64,000 bases of DNA from Ministeria vibrans ATCC 50519 (lineage: Eukaryota > Protista > Filasterea). The translations under genes and the position numbers were made by a program. The notes below the pieces were generated by a model that was not told the origin of the DNA, made no database searches, and worked only from the letters and a program-made list of their open reading frames with translations. Of this stretch, positions 49,926 to 62,339 are shown piece after piece; positions within the stretch are counted from its first letter, which is position 1, and every line of letters begins with the position of its first letter. The DNA is taken from assembly GCA_943704425.1 (NCBI GenBank), contig CALSCP010001656.1, positions 79,089 to 143,088 on the forward strand. Reading direction: 5' to 3'.

Positions 49926-49947
49926 TTAGGGTTAGGGTTAGGGTTAG
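49926..49947 (+). repeat. Interstitial telomeric repeat (TTAGGG)3+
   Basis: TTAGGGTTAGGGTTAGGGTTAG, same polarity as the terminal telomere. Confidence 0.9.
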
Positions 49948-50224: not shown

Positions 50225-50248
50225 GGTTAGGGTTAGGGTTAGGGTTAG
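50225..50248 (+). repeat. Interstitial telomeric repeat (TTAGGG)3+
   Basis: GGTTAGGGTTAGGGTTAGGGTTAG, same polarity as the terminal telomere. Confidence 0.9.
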
Positions 50249-52282: not shown

Positions 52283-55200
52283 TCAGAAAAACTTGACTGC
52301 AGGATCAGCATTGGACAGATCGTAGACAAACTGGCGCACTCGATCGTGCATGAACCTCTCGCTGCACTTTCCGAGCACACGCTCGATAGCACTCGACAGA
52401 TCGGGCACATTAACTCCCTGCCAAGGAGTCCGGAACTCGCCGAGGGCACGGTTCGCGTGGCGCGATCGATAAAAGACGCGGAGCGTCGAGTCACGAAGTT
52501 CGCTGTCGTACCGCATATGCACAAAGAACTCGTACTCTCCACCGTCGCGACAAACAAGAATGGACATGTCGGGGTACGAAGTAGATTCTTTCAGGAGGCG
52601 CTGCGACAAAGGGGTCGTGCGAGAGTGATCGCAAGAGTGTTGGTGAAGCAGCATAGCGCCAATGTCGTTGGTGGCAGCAACAGAGTAAGATTTAGCATTC
52701 TTTTCTGTGACCTCCTTGTTGTCGACGGGCATCTTTAGAATTATGGCGCAACAGCAAGCGACAGTGTTTGCGTTGTAGCGTCCCAGGCACGCAGGTATTG
52801 TGTACCGGACCTTTCCATGGTTCTATTTGTTTTTGATTGTGTTAGAGTATATACAGAGACAGTGAAGGAGAGACTTTCTTACCATAATATGCACTTCGTA
52901 TATAACATCGACAAGAATGGACCACTCGTGATTTCTCCTGTAGTCCAAATCGCCGTCATCTCTGTCCTCGTCGCCGTAGGAAAGAGCAAGACAGGAATCT
53001 TTGTCTGCTCCAGCGTACAAACGGCGCGACCCAACACAAACACCATCGCGATACATCTGGCGAAACGTGTCGAAAAATAGCCGCACCGCCTCCGCACGCG
53101 GAATATTTGTTGTAGGGATTCGATCTTTGGAGACGCGAGACGGATCGGAACCGACAGAATTGACAGAGGCGCAAACAGGTTGTTTCTCCAAGCCTGTCAA
53201 AGTGTCAGTCGTGACTGTCTTTTTGTGGCGTGCAATGTTGGTGCGAGTAAGCGGGTGGTGTGCACTCAGTCCGTGCATTTCACCGGTTCCGCTGAAGCTC
53301 GCGTCGTCGTCGTCACTTGCACTGTCTACGACCACGATATCGGGGAGCTCGAGCCCGCGGTATTCGCCAGCAACATGCATCTTCGTCGTGTAGTTCGTTT
53401 TGCCGCTGACAAGAGAGCGAGGCTCTGCACTCTCGCTCTCGGGGTCGTAACGTGGGTGGTCGCTAATACCGTGGCCAAGCAAGCGTTCCATAACAACCTC
53501 TTCTGCCGCACTCTTAGGCACACGAAGTGCGTCTGCATCCACGGTCTTGCGCTTCTTCTTCTCTTGCTGCGCCTCCTCCTCATTCGCCTCCTCTTGTCGT
53601 TCTCGCTCACGTCGTGCACGCTTCTTCTTCTTCCTCTCCCGCCGTTCCTTCTTTCGATTCGTTTCTTGTTGTCGGGCTTCCTGCCAAGCCAGCTCCTTCT
53701 CTTCTTCTTGTTGACGGACTGCTTCTTGCTGACGGGCGGCTTCTTGTTGTCGGGCTGCCTCTTCTCGCTGTCGACGGGCTGCTTCTTGTTGACGGGCTTC
53801 TTCTTGTCGGCGGGCTGCTTCTTGTTGGTCGACCGCTTCTTCTCGCTGTCGTACTGTCTCTTGTTGACGGGCTTCTTCTTGTTGACAGGCTGCCTCTTCT
53901 CGCTGTCGACGAGCTGCTTCTTGTTGACGAGCTGCTTCTTGCTGACGGGCGGCTTCTTGTTGTCGGGCTGCCTCTTCTCGCTGTCGACGGGCTGCTTCTC
54001 GTTGACGGGCTTCTTCTTGTCGGCGGGCTGCTTCATGTTGGTCGACCGCTTCTTCTCGCTGTCGTACTGTCTCTTGTTGACGGGCTTCGTCTTGTTGACG
54101 GGCTGCTTCTTCTCGCTGTCGACGAGCTGCTTCTTGTTGACGAGCTGCTTCTTGCTGACGGGCGGCTTCTTGTTGTCGGGCTGCCTCTTCTCGCTGTCGA
54201 CGGGCTGCTTCTTGTTGACGGGCTTCTTCTTGTTGGCGGGCTGCTTCTTGTTGGTCGACCGCTTCTTCTCGCTGTCGTACTGTCTCTTGTTGACGGGCTT
54301 CGTCTTGTTGACGGGCTGCTTCTTCTCGACGCTGCGCCGTTACCTTCTGCATCACCGCCAGCGACTTCATATGTCTCTCACGAAGTGCTGCTTTCGCCGC
54401 CTTTGACTCCTGATTGCGAATACGACACCTAGACTTCCTCTGGTTGGCACGTCTCTCCTTGTCCGCGAGGTCCTCTGCTTCCTGCGCCTCCTTCGCTTTA
54501 TCGTCACCCGTCGCTCCCTCCGCTTTCTCGAGACCCGTCGCTTTCTGTTTCTGTATCTTTTCGCGAGACTCTTGGTTCGCCGATCTCGCAGCCTGCTCCG
54601 CCTCCCCTCGTCTGCGTTCGCGCATCTTGCTGTCCATCGCTAACATCTGCTGTCGGTTGAAAGCTTCTCTCGACACCTTCATCTCGTTGACCAATGCGTT
54701 GAACTGAATTAATACCAGCCGCTGTTGTTCCTTCTCACGAGCGACCGCCTCGTCGTCCTCTTCATCTGCCCGTTTGCGTTTACGGCAGACAGGCTTCTTC
54801 AAATAGTCCGTTGCCAACCACATGGAGTCGCCGTTGAGATTAGACGCGCCCCCTCCTTCTTCTTCGCTCTCACTCTCACTCTCGCTCTCACTCTCGCTTT
54901 CCTGTCCTCCTCCGTCCTGCTCTCGTGTGGAACCGTCTTCCTGTCCTTTCCCTCCTTTTCCTCCTTCTCCTCCGTCTTGCTCTCGTGTGGAACCGTCTTC
55001 CTGTCCTTTCCCTCCTTTTCCTCCTTCTCCTCCGTCTTGCTCTCGTGTGAAACCACCTCCTACTCCTCCTCCTTTTCCGTCCTGCTCCCGTGTCGAACTG
55101 CGTATGAAACCGCGTTCCTCGTTGCCGTGACCAGCTTTGTTGATATTATCAGGCCGGGTGGGGTAATCGTTAAGCACGGGTGTAGACGATATCGCCCCAG

Positions 55201-55796
55201 ACCGGCGTTTCGCCAATAGTGTCTTCTACAACAAGAAAGTTTAATCATCTTCTATTGTCTCATGTGTTTACCGTCGGCGATGCCGCTGTCCTTTTCCTGT
55301 CAGGAGTGTCTTTGTACATGCCCTCGTACACAACAGAAACAGTACGAGTGGGTCGACGTCGAGGAGCACTGACAGCAATTACATGCTTTCGAGCTGCGGG
55401 CGGTGCGGGTGGTGCAGGCGGGTACACGATGAGCTTGACTGATTTTAAGGTCTTGCGGTTTGGCGATGCTTCGATAGATTCTTCAGAGATACACGATTCG
55501 TCCGATTCGCTGGATTCTTCGGGTTGTTCGACCGTCACACTGTGACCTGATTTCGAAACGCTCGCGTCACTGCATCTTTTCGCCCCGCCCGTCGTGCCTG
55601 CATCAACACCCTCGCCTGTGCTTGATGTGAGGTGGGTAGACTGGGCTTGTTTTGTCGCCAACGCCGGCGCAAAGCTAGCAGACGTTTCCTGAAACCTTTT
55701 ATTTTTAAAAAATGCCCTACAGCAAAAAATGAACATCCCAAGCGCCGCGCTTACCTCGTGTGCATCTGGTAACTGCATCTCAACAGGTGTGGTCAT
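52283..55796 (-). CDS. Large orphan protein: disordered N-terminus, (QEAARQ/RQREEA)n coiled-coil array, novel globular C-terminal domain; about 3 introns, start uncertain
   Basis: ORFs 55260-55871, 52823-55216 and 52283-52732 join through phase-consistent GT-AG introns (e.g. VHIM|NHGKVRYTIP...ILKMPVDNK). Confidence 0.7.
53660..54330. repeat. Coding tandem array (18-21-nt units in higher-order blocks)
   Basis: Near-identical TTGACGGGCTGCTTCTTG / CTCGCTGTCGACGGGC units, leaving several frames open. Confidence 0.9.
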
Positions 55797-56065: not shown

Positions 56066-56330
56066 GAGACAGAGAACGCGGCCTACCACGACTAAGGCGT
56101 CCGCACTGTCACCAACGAACACCAATCGATGAATGAGACTGAGGACCCAACGCACCACGACGAGGGCGTCAACATCACTGCCAGTGAGTCCCAGTCAGTG
56201 AATGAGACAGAGACGCGGCCTACCACGACGAAGGCGTCCACACTGTCACCAACGAACACCAATCGGTGAATGAGACTGAGGACCCAACGCACCACGACGA
56301 GAGCGTCAACATCACTGCCAGTGAGTCCCA
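56066..56330. repeat. Higher-order tandem repeat A-B-A-B (~69-bp monomers)
   Basis: Alternating GAATGAGACAGAG..CCTACCACGAC and GAATGAGACTGAGGACCCAACGCACCACGAC units. Confidence 0.88.
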
Positions 56331-56377
56331 AGAATGATGGTGGAAGAATAAATATGAGTTTTATTCATTTTTTTTTC

Positions 56378-59300
56378 ATGTCCTCGCCGAAACGCGTCGA
56401 AGTTGTTCGCGACAATTGTCTGCCGAGAACCGTGACAGCAGATTCTCACGACAATTTTGTTGGACGGCTGGAGAAGCTTGGATATGTACCCGCTGGAACA
56501 CCCAAAAACGACGTTGAAATTTGGCTGGTCAACGGTAGCATTGTTGACTGGGACGACCTTGTTGATGGCAAGGCTGAAGACGACAGGGACAGCGTGCGCG
56601 TTGTCGTGACGAGTGCTACTACTGCTACTGGTGCTGCTTCTACTGCAAGCGGGACCGGACAATCAGTTTCATCACCTTCGATTGCTCATAACAAAAAATG
56701 TGGCTACAACCGGCCCGGCCGCGTGGCAACATGCTGCCACATGCTCGAGTCCAAAGGATTGAGCGAGATTGACCGCGTGTACCATGCAGCAAAGCAGGAT
56801 GGGGCGGATTTTTACCAGGTATGAGGGAAAAAAAAAAAAAGAATTACAAGAAAACTGAACGCGTTCGCGTCCCAGACATACAGCGACATCATCAGACTCG
56901 CCATGCGCGCCTACCTCACCGACACCATCTTCAACCTCAGTGACGACGAGAAACTTGGCATCGCAACGTCGCTCAAGAAGACTATGTTGACCTCAGGCGA
57001 CTGTCGCGAACGTCTCTTTGACGCGTTTCGAACAGCAGCCGCCAAACTTGAGGAATGTGGCGTAGTGTTCAACGTTCAGCTCGACAACAAAGACAAGGTT
57101 GTGAAATCGCTGCTGCAGTCGCCCCGCAAGGCCAAGCTACTCGCGCTCCTTCTCTACCGCAGCATTGACTCGGACGTGATTCACAAGCACGTCGCTCCGC
57201 TCGGCGAGCTACTCGCCCGAGACTTCTTCGGCTACCCACGCGACCTCCTCAAGGCCTTTCGCGCGCTTTACCGACACGCTTCTCCCGGCGCCCCGTTGCG
57301 CAGTGTCGACGAGATCATCCACGACGCTGGCTTGGAACCCGCCGAGCGAAGCACACAGATCACTGTCACAGTCAGCCCTCACTCTGAGGCGGCCCTTCGC
57401 CTTCGCCTTGCTCTCCAACAGGTAAGCGTGTTAAAAAGTACACACAACAGCTCGTTGCCCCGTAATTATTATGTTTACTTTTTGTAGCTTGGAAAGGCCA
57501 CCGACGTGGTACGCGCCATTCTTAGCTTCAATACAACCGCAATGGCCGCCGCGCTCGCCGCCACCGGCATTGACGAGAACACACGGCCGATTGAGGACCA
57601 TCCGGGCAACTGGGATTCGTACAGCTTGTGCCAGTGCATCATCAAACTCAGAGCAACGTCGTTTCAAGAGTTCTTTGCTGCCAAGTCGCTTGACATGAAC
57701 AACCTCGACGAACTCGTGCGCGTCGCCGAGGTGGTGTTCTCGCTGCGCAACGACTCGGTCCACTCCTTTGTCTCGAGCAAACGCATTGACCGCGACTGGC
57801 CCAGCATCGTTGCTCTCTGCGATGTCCTCCGTCGTGTTGCTTCCCACGCTCATCCGGCGTCGGTTGTCCCGCTCGGCAAAGCTTTTGACAAGATTAGGGA
57901 GTGTGCATTCGCAACTCTTCGTCATGACGAACTGGATCTCATCAACAGCAACATCAGCGTTCGTGCGGAAGCGAAAGGAGAGACTGTAGTCCACAAGCTT
58001 GAAGATCGCGATCTCGCTTTCGTCCGCCTGCACATGGGCATGCTGCGCTTCATTGCGAGCGTTTTCCCAATCGTCAAAGCGGACCTTGAGCGCGTCGCTA
58101 CGGATGCTCTGTCCGCTGGCGCCATTCTACCAGACGCCGTTACGACTCTCACAACGGCAACAACAGAGACGCGTGCTTTGCCACTGTGGGCAGCAATTGC
58201 GGCGGCTGCTCGCTGCGATGCGGTTAAAGGGACTGCTGGGTGGACCCAACTCCACGACAACAATCGATTGTATTTTGTCGACGCGTGGTGGACGCTCGAT
58301 AATCTGTTTCACTACCTCCCGCTTATGCTGAACCGTCGCCAGCTCGACGGCGTTCAGTTTGGCGCAACAATGAACTGCGTTGCAGCGCAGCAATTGCAGA
58401 TCGATACGCAGAATTTCCGTTCAGTTTTGCGTGTTGTGAACGAGAGTCGCCATGAGCGCGACGTACCTGTCGACGACGTTGACGAGTGTCTCGCTACAAT
58501 GCAGGACATTGTGAGGCAGGCAGTCGAGATGAGTGGCGCCAGACAGAGCACAGCGAGCGATGCTGCTAGTGAACTCGCACGACTCGTCAATGTAAGCCTG
58601 GCGCTTCCTGAACACCAGTTGCGGTCGTTCGAGGTGCGGCATCCTGCGTGGTCTGACGGCGAGAAGCGTAAGTTTCGTGGGCGAGGCGTCTTCTGCGACG
58701 CGATCTTTCAGGCGTTGTACATGCCAAACAAGCGCGGCGTCCTCGTCATGGCGCCCATGGGCTTTGGCAAGAGTGCACTGGCGGCGCGCATCGCTTCTGG
58801 GTCAAGCAAGGTGTGCGTTGTATCGACAAGCGTGTGCTACTACCGGGACCCCGAAAGCCTGAGCCCGCTTCGTTTTGTGCGCAACCTGCTATCGGATCTG
58901 CGGCGTAACCTGTCACCCGAGTTTACATTCCGTTGCACCGCGCTCGACGTGCCCACGTGCATCTCCGAGACGGACGTCGACACCACCGTCGAGCGCGTTG
59001 TCAAGGTGCTTCGATCCATGAGTGCTCCGCCCGATTTCACCGCCAACGGCACCGTGTCGGTTGTGCTTGTTGATGGAATCGATGAGGCCGTCGCCATGGG
59101 AAATCGTGAACTTGTGTTGGCGCTGCACAACCTTGCACGCATGGTTCCTCCATGGCTGCGTGTGCTGGTGACGAGCTGTGACGATCCTGAGGTGCTGAGT
59201 ATCATCTCGGCAGACGCACGTGATTACGAGATGGTCTCGTTTGGTGCACCCAAGTTGCGCGAGGCAGCCACCGACGACGTGATCGCGGTGCTGCGTGAGT

Positions 59301-62049
59301 TCCTGAAGGAGAACCCGGCTGCTGCCTTACATGTGCCGGACGAGAACGAATTTGCCGAGGTGTCCACCGGCCTCATGCTGTGGACGACGACAGTGTTGAG
59401 TGAGATGAGGCTTCGCGGCGACTTTGACTGGCGCTCTTGCCGAGGAATGGCACGGCTCTACGATCACCAATTTCGACTTCGATTTCGTGATTCGTTCAAC
59501 GAGCAAGTTCGACCTGTGTTTGAGGTGCTGTTGGCTGCGTTCGAGCCGATGACGCTGGAGCAGCTTGCTCGCGTTGCGTTTCCTGCCAGCCATGCGCCGG
59601 GGGATGAGACCCTTGCATTGGTGCGTCCCATGCTGGTGGAGCAGGCAGTGTCTTCTAACGGGAGTACAAGCAAGACGAGGTTTGGTGTGCAGCTAGCACT
59701 GGACAAGTGGCTGCGCGGCGACAATGACATCAAACACGATTTTCGCATTGACGTTGCCCTTGGTCATGGGCGTTTGGCGGACGCTGGGTTCCAGCTTGAT
59801 GGTGGAGGCATGATTCCAGAGCCGTTGGGCTTGGACTTTTGCCCGCCTGTGCTAGTGCGACATGTGGCAGAGAGCGGACGAGTTGTGACGGAGCAGAAGG
59901 CGAGGACGGGCGGCCAGCTTGGCGAAGATGAGCGGTGTCGTGAAGAGAGGTGGCGGTGTGTGTGTGAGGCGGTTGCGGACTGCCACTCGTGGAGTGACGA
60001 GCGGGCCTTTGCACTCATGGCTGTCGGGTCTGCTGTGGAGTTATATCTGGCTGCCAACGGGGATGCAAAGCTGATTGTTGGCGACTCGCTGCTCGCGAAG
60101 GTGGTGGCGAACGGCGACGATGGATTGGCGTGCGACCTGTTGATCCAGGCGGGTGCTGACCCACTGGCGTCATCGACCAACGGTTGGACGGCGTTGTTCT
60201 CTGCGGCATACAATGGGCGCACAGAGTGTATGCAACTGGTATTGGCGTACGTTTGTCAACATTCCGCGGAAGCGTCGAATTCGGTGAATGCGGGTTTGGA
60301 AGAGAACACCGGCTTGTCGCCATTGACGGCGGCGTGTCGCAGGGGTCCGATTGAGATTGTGGAGTTGTTGCTGGACGTGAAGTGCGAGCGGGATGCGGCA
60401 ACGCGGGCAGACGTGAACCAAGTTGCCGGGGAGTATTCGGCGCTGACGTCTGCTGTGCGCGAGGGACACGTTGAGATTGTGGGGTTGTTGCTGAGAGAGG
60501 GAGCGGTCGTGGACAAGGTCGCCGGCGAGTACTCGGCGTTGACATCTGCTGTGCGCAACGGACACGTTGAGATTGTGGAGTTGTTGCTGAGACAGGGAGC
60601 GGCCGTGAACCAAGTCGCCGGCGAGTACTCGGCACTGACGACTGCTGTGCGAAATGGACACATTAAGATTGTGGAGTTGTTGCTGAGACAGGGAGCGGCC
60701 GTGAATCAAGTCGCCGGCGAGTACTCGGCGCTGACATCTGCTGTGCGACATGGACGCATTGAGGTTGTGGAGTTGTTGCTGGACGTGAAGCGCAAGCGGG
60801 GTGCGGCAACACGGGCAGACGTGAACCTAGTCGCCGGCGAGTACTCGGCGTTGACATCTGCTGTGCGCGAGGGACACGTTGAGATTGTGGAGTTGTTGCT
60901 GAAAGAGGGAGCGGTCGTGGACAAGGTCGCCGGCGAGTACACCGCACTGTTGAATGCCGTGCGACATGGGCACATTGAAACCGTAAAGTTGCTTCTGGAC
61001 GTGAGCCGTGAGCGGGATGCAGCACCCTTAACGCAGGCTGACGTGAACAAAGTAGCTGGCGGATTTTCTCCACTGATGTCTGCCGTCTGCAATGGACACG
61101 TTGAGATTGTGGAGTTGTTGCTGGACGTGAAGCGCAAGCGGGATGCGGCAACGCGGGCAGACGTGAACCTAGTCGCCGGCGAGTACTCGGCGTTGACGAC
61201 TGCTGTGCGACATGGACACGTTGAGATTGTGGAGTTGTTGCTGAGACAAGGAGCGGCCGTGAACCTAGTCGCCGGCGAGTACTCGGCGTTGACGACTGCT
61301 GTGCGACATGGACACGNNNNNNNGTGCGACATGGACACGTTGAGATTGTGGAGTTGTTGCTGAGACAAGGAGCGGCCGTGAACCTAGTCGCCGGCGAGTA
61401 CTCGGCGTTGACGACTGCTGTGCGACATGGACACATTAAGATTGTGGAGTTGTTGCTGGACGTGAAGTGCGAGCGGGATGCGGCAACACGGGCAGATGTG
61501 AACCAATTCGCTGGCCTGTATACGCCACTAACGTCGGCCGCCCGTACTAATCGGCCTGACCTTGTCAAATTGCTGCTGGAACATGGTGCCAATCCCTTCG
61601 TGGAGGTGCGCAGTGGCAGCAAAACGTTCACTGCATGGGGTTCTGCACCCCGTGGAAGCCCAGCCCAGCGTCTCATTGGTCCGACCACACGATTGTTTTA
61701 GTTTTGTCTGTTCTCACCCGTTCTTGTGTTGTTTTTCACTCTCTTCTTTTCTTCTTGGACTTCTACAGGGAAGGCACAACGCTCGTCTCAGCGGCCCAAC
61801 ACCACCCAGTCACCAAGGCAGACAAGGCCCTTTCGCAATGACGCAAGTGCAGCACCTGACGCGCACGGTCGATCGCGCTGGTTTGGATCGCATGCATCTC
61901 GAACCACACAACACCGCCATGGCAATGAGACAGCGACAAGTGCCCACGCCGACAACTGGCGAAGGCCCGTCGACGACCCTGGCCCCTCCAGTTCGACTGC
62001 TGATGCCGATGGGTGGCAGATTGTCTCCCGAAGACGTGGTCGACGCTAA
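56378..62049 (+). CDS. NLR-like STAND protein: Ubl-like header, helical domain, HEPN, degenerate HEPN, NACHT-type NTPase, ankyrin repeats, disordered tail (exons 56378-56818, 56876-57421, 57488-61678, 61769-62049; gap at 61317-61323)
   Basis: Phase-consistent GT-AG introns. WDSYSLCQCII...F...FF...LRNDSVH is an R-N-x3-H HEPN motif. Walker A APMGFGKS, Walker B VVLVDGIDE, LRVLVTS, GLMLW; 13 or more ankyrin repeats. The last exon is less certain (unspliced stop at 61701). Confidence 0.85.
60340..61510 (+). repeat. Near-identical coding ankyrin repeat array (96-nt and ~120-nt units)
   Basis: Repeated GTCGCCGGCGAGTACTCGGCG..ACTGCTGTGCG..GGACAC.TTGAGATTGTGGAGTTGTTGCTG. Confidence 0.95.
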
Positions 62050-62339
62050 GATCAACCCGATGCCAACCACAATCGCAGTGATGACACTCGGCAGCGACGG
62101 TGATTAAAATGTAGACAATATGAAATTAATATAAGTATACTGTCTTTGTTATTGGTACCTTCATCCTCTTCACCATTTGGGATCTTTACTCGTCGTACGT
62201 CATTTCGTCTCGGTCAATATGCGCTCGTGTGGCATTCCAGCTCAGAGCCTCAGACTCAGTTTCTTCGTTTCGTTTCAATTTTGATATTTGAGTCGAGATT
62301 CAATTCACTCGGAATAATTTATTTTGTTATCATACAATC

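Follow-up and report, generated by a model that had tools for sequence, protein, structure and literature searches.

The gene discussed here lies on the forward strand near the end of a contig of the filasterean protist Ministeria vibrans, in a stretch of 64,000 nucleotides that we call the window (G000:C1656:79089-143088). The contig closes at 63896-64000 with a (TTAGGG)n telomere, about 2 kb past the gene. An earlier note on this DNA, made from its letters alone, had read the gene as an NLR-like receptor in which two RNase-like HEPN domains stand ahead of a NACHT-type STAND ATPase and an array of ankyrin repeats. The chassis of that reading is borne out by our analysis: a single gene, spliced and located at a true chromosome end, encodes an NLR-like STAND ATPase that bears ankyrin repeats, as supported by introns shared with a paralog, by Pfam matches and by the telomere itself. 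The motifs that the note had quoted are likewise all found where it placed them and in a single reading frame, namely RNDSVH (57746-57763), VNESRH (58436-58453), GFGKS (58760-58774) and VVLVDGIDE (59060-59086). For the effector, the full statement that we favor, an NLR-like ATPase receptor whose effector is a divergent HEPN-type RNase head, is given a probability of about 0.5, and the evidence for it starts from an RNxxxH motif under strong constraint. Read from its N terminus, the predicted protein has a short N-terminal module, about 570 amino acids of helical domains, a NACHT-type NTPase, a winged helix, some 13 ankyrin repeats and a low-complexity tail (Table 1).

Table 1. Features of the gene, in window coordinates (aa, amino acids; nt, nucleotides; C656 and C524 are the contigs of the two paralogs, L005 and L004)
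Feature	Positions	Strand	Details
Exon 1	56378-56818	+	147 aa; ATG at 56378 aligned to the ATG of the C656 paralog (L005); 64% identity
Intron 1	56819-56875	+	57 nt, GTATGA..CAG; holds an in-frame stop; position common to L005
Exon 2	56876-57421	+	182 aa; 79% identity to L005, third-position mismatches in excess
Intron 2	57422-57487	+	66 nt, GTAAGC..TTTTTGTAG; in L005 too, absent from the C524 open reading frame
Exon 3	57488-~61678	+	blocks 1 and 2, NTPase, winged helix, ankyrin array
Block 1, candidate catalytic HEPN-like domain	57488-57922	+	exon 3 aa 1-145; all-helical
Block 2, helical module directly before the ATPase	58160-58660	+	exon 3 aa 225-391
NACHT-type STAND P-loop NTPase	58727-59176	+	Pfam NPHP3_N, 32.3 bits against a cut-off of 24.8
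TANC1-like winged helix-turn-helix	59486-59779	+	HTH_TANC1, 24.3 bits, below the cut-off of 27
Ankyrin array	60101-61605	+	~13 repeats; Pfam Ank_2 E=2e-62, Ank E=7e-58
Probable intron 3	61679-61768	+	weak donor G/GT at 61679; acceptor with pyrimidine tract and AG at 61767-61768
Probable terminal exon	61769-62049	+	~94 aa, low complexity; TAA at 62047-62049

The genome (a 29.7-Mb assembly in 2860 contigs) was searched for paralogs and siblings, and two paralogs were found, on contigs C656 and C524. The C656 copy, 76% identical to the window copy over the N-terminal region, agrees with it in ATG context and in the positions of both introns; the C524 copy is 24-28% identical and runs as a single continuous open reading frame of 1501 amino acids past the point that corresponds to the junction of exons 2 and 3. 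In every exon, the C656 and window copies mismatch at 0.22-0.38 of third codon positions, compared with 0.08-0.24 of first and second positions, and about one in two of the codons that differ do so synonymously. Exon 1 shows this coding pattern plainly, with mismatches of 0.24, 0.21 and 0.38 at the three codon positions. Judged by these sequence comparisons, the three copies make up a lineage-specific family, and the gene is intact and selectively maintained. What did not survive the survey of paralogs is the subtelomeric setting as a trait of the family: both paralogs are 32 kb or more away from the nearer end of their contigs, and thus the notion of a subtelomeric family does not generalize.

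Read without splicing, a single frame is open from 56270 to 61363 apart from two stops, both of which fall inside short canonical GT-AG introns. With a conserved ATG context, conserved introns and coding-like divergence, we accept exons 1 and 2 and the start of exon 3 as listed, and searches and folds were run exon by exon. At the 3′ end, the stop that closes the exon 3 frame differs between the paralogs, being TAG at 61699 here and TAG eight codons earlier in L005, and the acceptor of the probable third intron is kept in L005 with its pyrimidine tract and AG. The terminal exon proposed in the note, ending at 62049, is plausible on the strength of this acceptor, of indels relative to L005 that are multiples of 3 in 6 of 6 cases, and of a synonymous bias in the divergence. 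The choice of its frame rests solely on 62050-62104, the last 18 codons of the paralog; of the codons that differ there, 6 of 11 are synonymous when read in the frame ending at 62049 and 1 of 10 in the other. L005 has CAA (~9860) where the window copy has its TAA, so the window protein is 18 codons shorter than that of the paralog, and the 18 codons past the TAA still diverge with a synonymous bias. An alternative donor at 61606 is possible and would lead to the other last-exon frame, ending at 62107.

Within the ankyrin array there is a gap of 7 N at 61318-61324, flanked by a 100% identical 112-nucleotide duplicate (61205-61434). Gap and duplicate together are probably an unmerged contig overlap and not real sequence; on that reading the ankyrin copy number, which the gap leaves uncertain, and the apparent jump of frame are matters of assembly. 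A pseudogene, or an assembly artifact yielding no full-length protein, would be suggested by the two stops in the unspliced reading, by the frame shift at the gap and by a terminal exon 18 codons short of its counterpart. However, both stops sit in canonical introns that the paralog conserves, divergence is of the coding type in all exons, and an exact duplicate around a gap is typical of an unmerged overlap; we therefore regard this explanation as very improbable.

The matches to NPHP3_N, HTH_TANC1 and ankyrin models identify the core of the protein as a STAND NTPase of the NACHT clade, built like those of NPHP3 and TANC1. NPHP3_N scores 52.6 bits in the distant paralog on C524 and 29.7 bits in the other, and HTH_TANC1 reaches 53.7 bits in the distant one; the generic NACHT model, PF05729, does not reach its cut-off, scoring 13.3-23.6 bits. 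Walker A (MGFGKS, 58757-58774) and Walker B fit the patterns GxxxxGK[ST] and hhhhDGhDE, and both are kept in the paralogs. Beyond Pfam, no relatives of the NTPase were detected by word-indexed protein search or among PDB sequences. Several of the ankyrin repeats are near-identical at the DNA level, and Tandem Repeats Finder reports periods of 96 and 216 nucleotides. As for the strict features of animal NLRs, no LRR, CARD, PYD or BIR match was returned by Pfam, and the repeats are ankyrin; "NLR-like" is thus used here as an architectural analogy only.

From the same matches one could argue for a TANC/NPHP3-like scaffold ATPase with a housekeeping function in signaling or trafficking and none in immunity, since outside the repeats Pfam is significant for NPHP3_N and for the TANC1-like winged helix alone and ankyrin repeats come next, which is the order of the TANC core. 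A housekeeping scaffold fits poorly, however, with a lineage-restricted family of three divergent copies for which no orthologs were detected elsewhere, with a gene 2 kb from a telomere, with near-identical ankyrin repeats that can be likened to the variable repeats of fungal NLRs, and with the many sibling NTPases in this genome that carry nuclease-type heads. We consider it distinctly unlikely.

Ahead of the helical blocks, exon 1 encodes at its N terminus a candidate small module rich in beta structure, labeled Ubl (ubiquitin-like, with a putative beta-grasp fold) in the earlier note; a linker rich in Ala, Thr and Ser comes next, and then a Cys/His patch that is conserved. The patch (56690-56760; 4960-5030 in L005) reads H-N-K-K-C-G-Y-x-R-P-G-R-x-A-T-C-C-H-M-L and may bind metal; exon 1, with the patch included, has no family match in Pfam or among PDB sequences. 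Exon 2 encodes a helical region of no assigned family that is common to all three paralogs, and in the C524 open reading frame its equivalent continues directly into the equivalent of block 1. It has no match in Pfam, and its alignment to HEPN profiles by hhalign gives P=0.4-0.6.

The candidate active site lies in block 1. Two stretches of this block are invariant in the three paralogs, W42-D43-x-Y-S-x-C (D43 at 57614-57616) and L86-R87-N88-D89-x-x-H92-S93 (R87-S93 at 57746-57766). The 15-mer around RNDSVH is identical to that of the distant paralog at 9 of 15 positions, in a protein that is 24% identical overall; this equals the conservation of the Walker A stretch and exceeds that of the Walker B stretch. 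The strong constraint on RNxxxH is the part of the HEPN claim that stands. Two features by which HEPN domains are recognized are also found here: the Rx4-6H motif with a polar residue (N, D or H) after the Arg, in the form R87-N88-D89-S-V-H92, and, at the sequence level, a conserved upstream acidic residue, D43, located 44 residues before R87. Moreover, hhalign puts the W-D of block 1 onto the W-D of a profile of Swt1-type HEPN domains. When DSSP was applied to both of the low-confidence AlphaFold models described below (predicted local distance difference test [pLDDT] scores of 39 and 45), a helix ended at 88-89, H92 lay in a loop and a long helix began at 97. In composition and in the preceding acidic residue, the motif fits the definition of HEPN in PMC3710099 at the sequence level, and the helix-end/loop position suggested by the two low-confidence models would agree with it.

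Two profiles served to look for the fold itself, one of 9 HEPN heads from the Ministeria vibrans genome and one of 60 Swt1-type domains taken from bacterial genomes of the Planctomycetota and the Chloroflexota. The results are suggestive of a similarity to Swt1-type HEPN, in numbers that agree in direction but are weak. Against the Swt1 profile, block 2 aligned locally with a P of 0.017 in hhalign, with 3 of 150 permuted templates reaching its score; globally, on the 69-column core, it aligned end to end over 65 columns with a P of 0.0083 and 2 of 150 permuted templates. As controls, four further segments taken from these proteins, and templates that had been reversed, gave P=0.12-0.97. In no-filter hmmsearch against the profile of the genome's own HEPN heads, the share of 1000 shuffles that reached the score of block 1 was about 0.02, 0.02 and 0.15, compared with 0.07, 0.011 and 0.008 in the case of block 2, so that both blocks outscore most shuffles. 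The named neighbors in the ESM Atlas, whether the query was the whole region or just block 1, are all HEPN families: HEPN_Swt1 (0.87, 0.86 and 0.85), HEPN_DZIP3 (0.83) and DUF4559 (0.82-0.83). Scores below 0.9 in this atlas are treated as leads only.

Several results count against a HEPN head. Block 1, the one with the motif, aligned to the Swt1 profile locally with P=0.055 (11 of 150 permuted templates) and globally, on the 69-column core, with P=0.74 (90 of 150), and neither block was significant by hhalign against the genome's own HEPN profile (P of about 0.23). Because many comparisons were run, even a P of about 0.01 fails correction. The same test recovers true HEPN heads with ease, those of the genome matching the bacterial Swt1 profile at P=4.6e-10 and subsets of three such sequences at P=1e-6 to 1e-8; taken one at a time, the sequences gave values between 4.6e-7 and 0.11. 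Blocks 1 and 2 and exons 1 and 2 had no match, to HEPN or to anything else, in Pfam (E<=1 or 10), PADLOC, NCBIfam or PDB sequences. AlphaFold2 on three-sequence alignments reached pLDDT values of 38.6 (391 amino acids) and 45.0 (155 amino acids), and Foldseek against the PDB, together with VIA-align, on the pLDDT-45.0 model returned generic helical bundles and no HEPN, an outcome that is uninformative at such confidence. Since the searches described next turned up no relatives in other genomes, the alignment is three sequences deep and offers neither covariation nor depth. On this evidence the HEPN fold assigned in the earlier note is a candidate, the constrained motif being joined by no library match, low-confidence models and sub-significant profile values.

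Wider searches were consistent with the isolation of the family. No match to the 391-amino-acid N-terminal region was found by phmmer among 1.84 billion representative proteins, and metagenome scans of JGI contigs gave no relatives. Word-indexed protein searches with the block 1 profile, with the NACHT region and with a DUF4559 head meant to seed a deep profile returned nothing. Genome-wide use of Pfam PF18738 gave no match to the blocks of the family, a PDB profile search gave noise only, and merging blocks 1 and 2 into one profile brought no improvement.

The leading rival reading is that the receptor is indeed a STAND-ankyrin protein, with a lineage-specific adaptor or effector head that is not HEPN at all, where RNDxxHS has some other catalytic or binding role and block 2 is NNH-like. 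All library and profile tests for HEPN are sub-significant, while the profile test picks up the genome's true HEPN heads with ease; D and R are spaced 44 residues apart in block 1, where the Swt1 profile has 36; the residues at +2 to +4 of the motif (D-S/N-V/G) are unlike the RNxWAH of the genome's HEPN family; and NNH exists as a named pre-NACHT category in bacterial NACHT proteins (bioRxiv 10.1101/2022.07.19.500537). On the other hand, the composition and position of the motif and its upstream acidic residue fit the HEPN definition, the ESM neighbors are exclusively HEPN families, and none of the control segments or reversed templates aligns across the Swt1 core as well as block 2 does. We hold a non-HEPN head to be a genuine possibility, at odds clearly short of even.

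Block 2 has a different set of invariant residues, E319-x-R321-H322-x-x-D325 and also D271. In its motif, V317-N318-E-S-R-H322, Val317 takes the place of the HEPN Arg, and there is no conserved Rx4-6H, position -5 being V or I and position -7 being R, C or absent. Unexpectedly, it is block 2 that resembles the Swt1 core over its whole length, and block 1, the keeper of the catalytic motif, that resembles it less. In the alignment of block 2 to the core, W..D..L is matched, N-E-S-R-H falls on R-N-x-W-A-H, V-D-D..C-L falls on s-D-D..a-L, and the last helix is included. The two blocks had been described in the earlier note as similarly built, a description that found no backing, as hhalign of block 1 against block 2 gives P=0.23 and MAFFT leaves their two motifs out of register. 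The autoinhibitory pseudo-partner proposed in that note is a conjecture. A more elaborate scheme is that of a tandem HEPN pair, in which a catalytic RNDSVH domain and an Arg-less one would form an intramolecular pseudo-dimer whose RNase site stays incomplete, with NACHT oligomerization, set off through the ankyrin array, swapping the partners to create active catalytic-catalytic sites. We think such a scheme unlikely; were it real, the protein would be an NLR of a eukaryote, and a unicellular one, that unites an RNase effector and its own autoinhibition in a single chain.

STAND proteins undergo nucleotide-dependent oligomerization, and HEPN RNases such as RNase L's and Ire1's KEN domain, Cas13 and Csm6 become active when domains pair. 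For the reading that we favor, a receptor with a divergent HEPN-type head, a mechanism can be sketched on these lines. The ankyrin array would keep the protein off and sense a ligand; ligand binding would drive nucleotide-dependent oligomerization of the NACHT module; and oligomerization would bring the N-terminal regions together. The effector would be a very divergent, metal-independent HEPN-type RNase in block 1, acting through R87, N88 and H92, and block 2, Swt1-core-like and lacking the Arg, would serve as a noncatalytic partner or as a linker. The output would be cleavage of RNA, with arrested growth or death as its consequence, on the model of RNase L. On this reading the gene product may have an immune role.

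The surroundings of the gene offer a few further observations. Two interstitial (TTAGGG)3 blocks, at 49926-49943 and 50227-50244, lie about 14 kb inward of the terminal telomere. Directly upstream of the gene, at 52823-55216 on the reverse strand, is an open reading frame of 797 amino acids dominated by near-perfect EEARQQEAARRQRE-type coiled-coil repeats and acidic/Gly-rich repeats. Ahead of the start codon, at 56092-56331, there are direct repeats of the form …CACGACGA[AG]GGCGTC…CACCAA…GAATGAGAC…, with a T-rich stretch between them and the ATG, and a T-rich stretch of a similar kind precedes the ATG of the L005 paralog. Between the gene and the telomere, at 62340-63320, lies an intronless open reading frame resembling D-2-hydroxyacid dehydrogenases, whose best matches among bacterial genomes, the sole group compared, are at 42-48% identity (Abditibacteriaceae, Geodermatophilus, Ottowia and Rubrobacteraceae).

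The genome also holds HEPN domains that are recognized with confidence. There are at least 9 matches of the DUF4559/CXorf38 type and 3 of the Swt1 type (the latter including one of 58.9 bits on C1090), most of them N-terminal in open frames of 800-1550 amino acids and almost all with RNxWAH. NPHP3_N-type loci number at least 21. Siblings with HEPN or NPHP3_N are found on C1907, C312, C716, C2170, C879, C1329, C1982, C2424, C2404, C2290 and C1090 (loci L009-L023); five contigs appear in both the HEPN and the NPHP3_N lists, and several of the open reading frames with a Pfam-detectable HEPN head also carry an NPHP3_N-type NTPase. A BLASTP comparison of the distant paralog with one HEPN-NACHT sibling matched at the Walker motifs only. 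Among bacteria, Swt1-type HEPN was observed in 33 of 301 sampled genomes from the phylum of a Planctomycetota metagenome-assembled genome (MAG) and in 57 of 301 from that of an Ardenticatenaceae MAG, mostly in open frames of about 1100-1200 amino acids (loci L072-L131).

HEPN-NACHT proteins have been predicted to be immune receptors with RNase effectors since 2013, and the surveys cited here contain no biochemical characterization of them. A small-genome unicellular eukaryote with a whole set of HEPN-NACHT proteins could make the idea of an RNase triggered by NLR oligomerization testable. The sibling genes are the better first targets for experiments because their HEPN domains are confidently recognized; the gene in the window is the harder and less certain case. 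What the locus adds is a very divergent head, possibly a pair of catalytic and noncatalytic HEPN domains, mounted at a chromosome end on a chassis of TANC1-like ATPase and ankyrin repeats.

Among known systems, the closest to hand are the DUF4559/Swt1-type HEPN-STAND siblings, for example those on C2290, C312, C1907, C716 and C1329, several of which share the NPHP3_N-type P-loop and all of which have an N-terminal head with RN...H. They differ in that their heads are significant in Pfam and reach P=1e-6 to 1e-10 against bacterial Swt1, whereas the studied family stays at P=0.02-0.06. With TANC1/TANC2 and NPHP3 the gene has in common the NPHP3_N-type NTPase, the TANC1-like winged helix behind it and then the ankyrin repeats; unlike them, it has no detected TPR region, it has another N-terminal region, and it is a subtelomeric member of a lineage-specific family of paralogs. 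Fungal NACHT-ankyrin NLRs reportedly combine high internal repeat identity with variable N-terminal effector domains, and the likeness here, by description only, is that of NACHT with ankyrin repeats of high identity. RNase L is a working analogy, in that an ankyrin sensor controls the dimerization of a HEPN RNase (architecture as in PMC3710099). In RNase L the order is ankyrin, pseudokinase and KEN/HEPN, whereas in the window protein a NACHT ATPase would do the oligomerizing, the candidate RNase is N-terminal and there is no sequence relationship.

In its overall design the protein also resembles the animal HEPN-NACHT proteins, and it was here that the earlier note had overstated the novelty of the architecture. 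Fusions of DZIP3-like and CXorf38-like HEPN to NACHT, ankyrin, CARD and DEATH were tabulated for animals in 2013 (PMC3710099, Table 1), along with HEPN expansions in Nematostella, oyster and Capsaspora and bacterial HEPN-STAND fusions; more than 50 NACHT proteins of the pearl oyster have an N-terminal DZIP3-like HEPN (PMC9646362); and HEPN is among the effectors of bacterial NACHT proteins (bioRxiv 10.1101/2022.07.19.500537). Since it has been catalogued in animals and bacteria, HEPN-NACHT-ankyrin is known as a kind of architecture. The animal proteins and this one share an N-terminal helical domain with RNxxxH, a NACHT module, C-terminal repeats that include ankyrin, lineage-specific expansion and a predicted RNase effector. 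The differences are a head that matches neither Pfam model, a possible tandem of modules, some 330 residues (exons 1 and 2) ahead of them, and a protist host. What is new at this locus is a head too divergent for any model, possibly in tandem, on a TANC1-like chassis, in a protist and beside a telomere.

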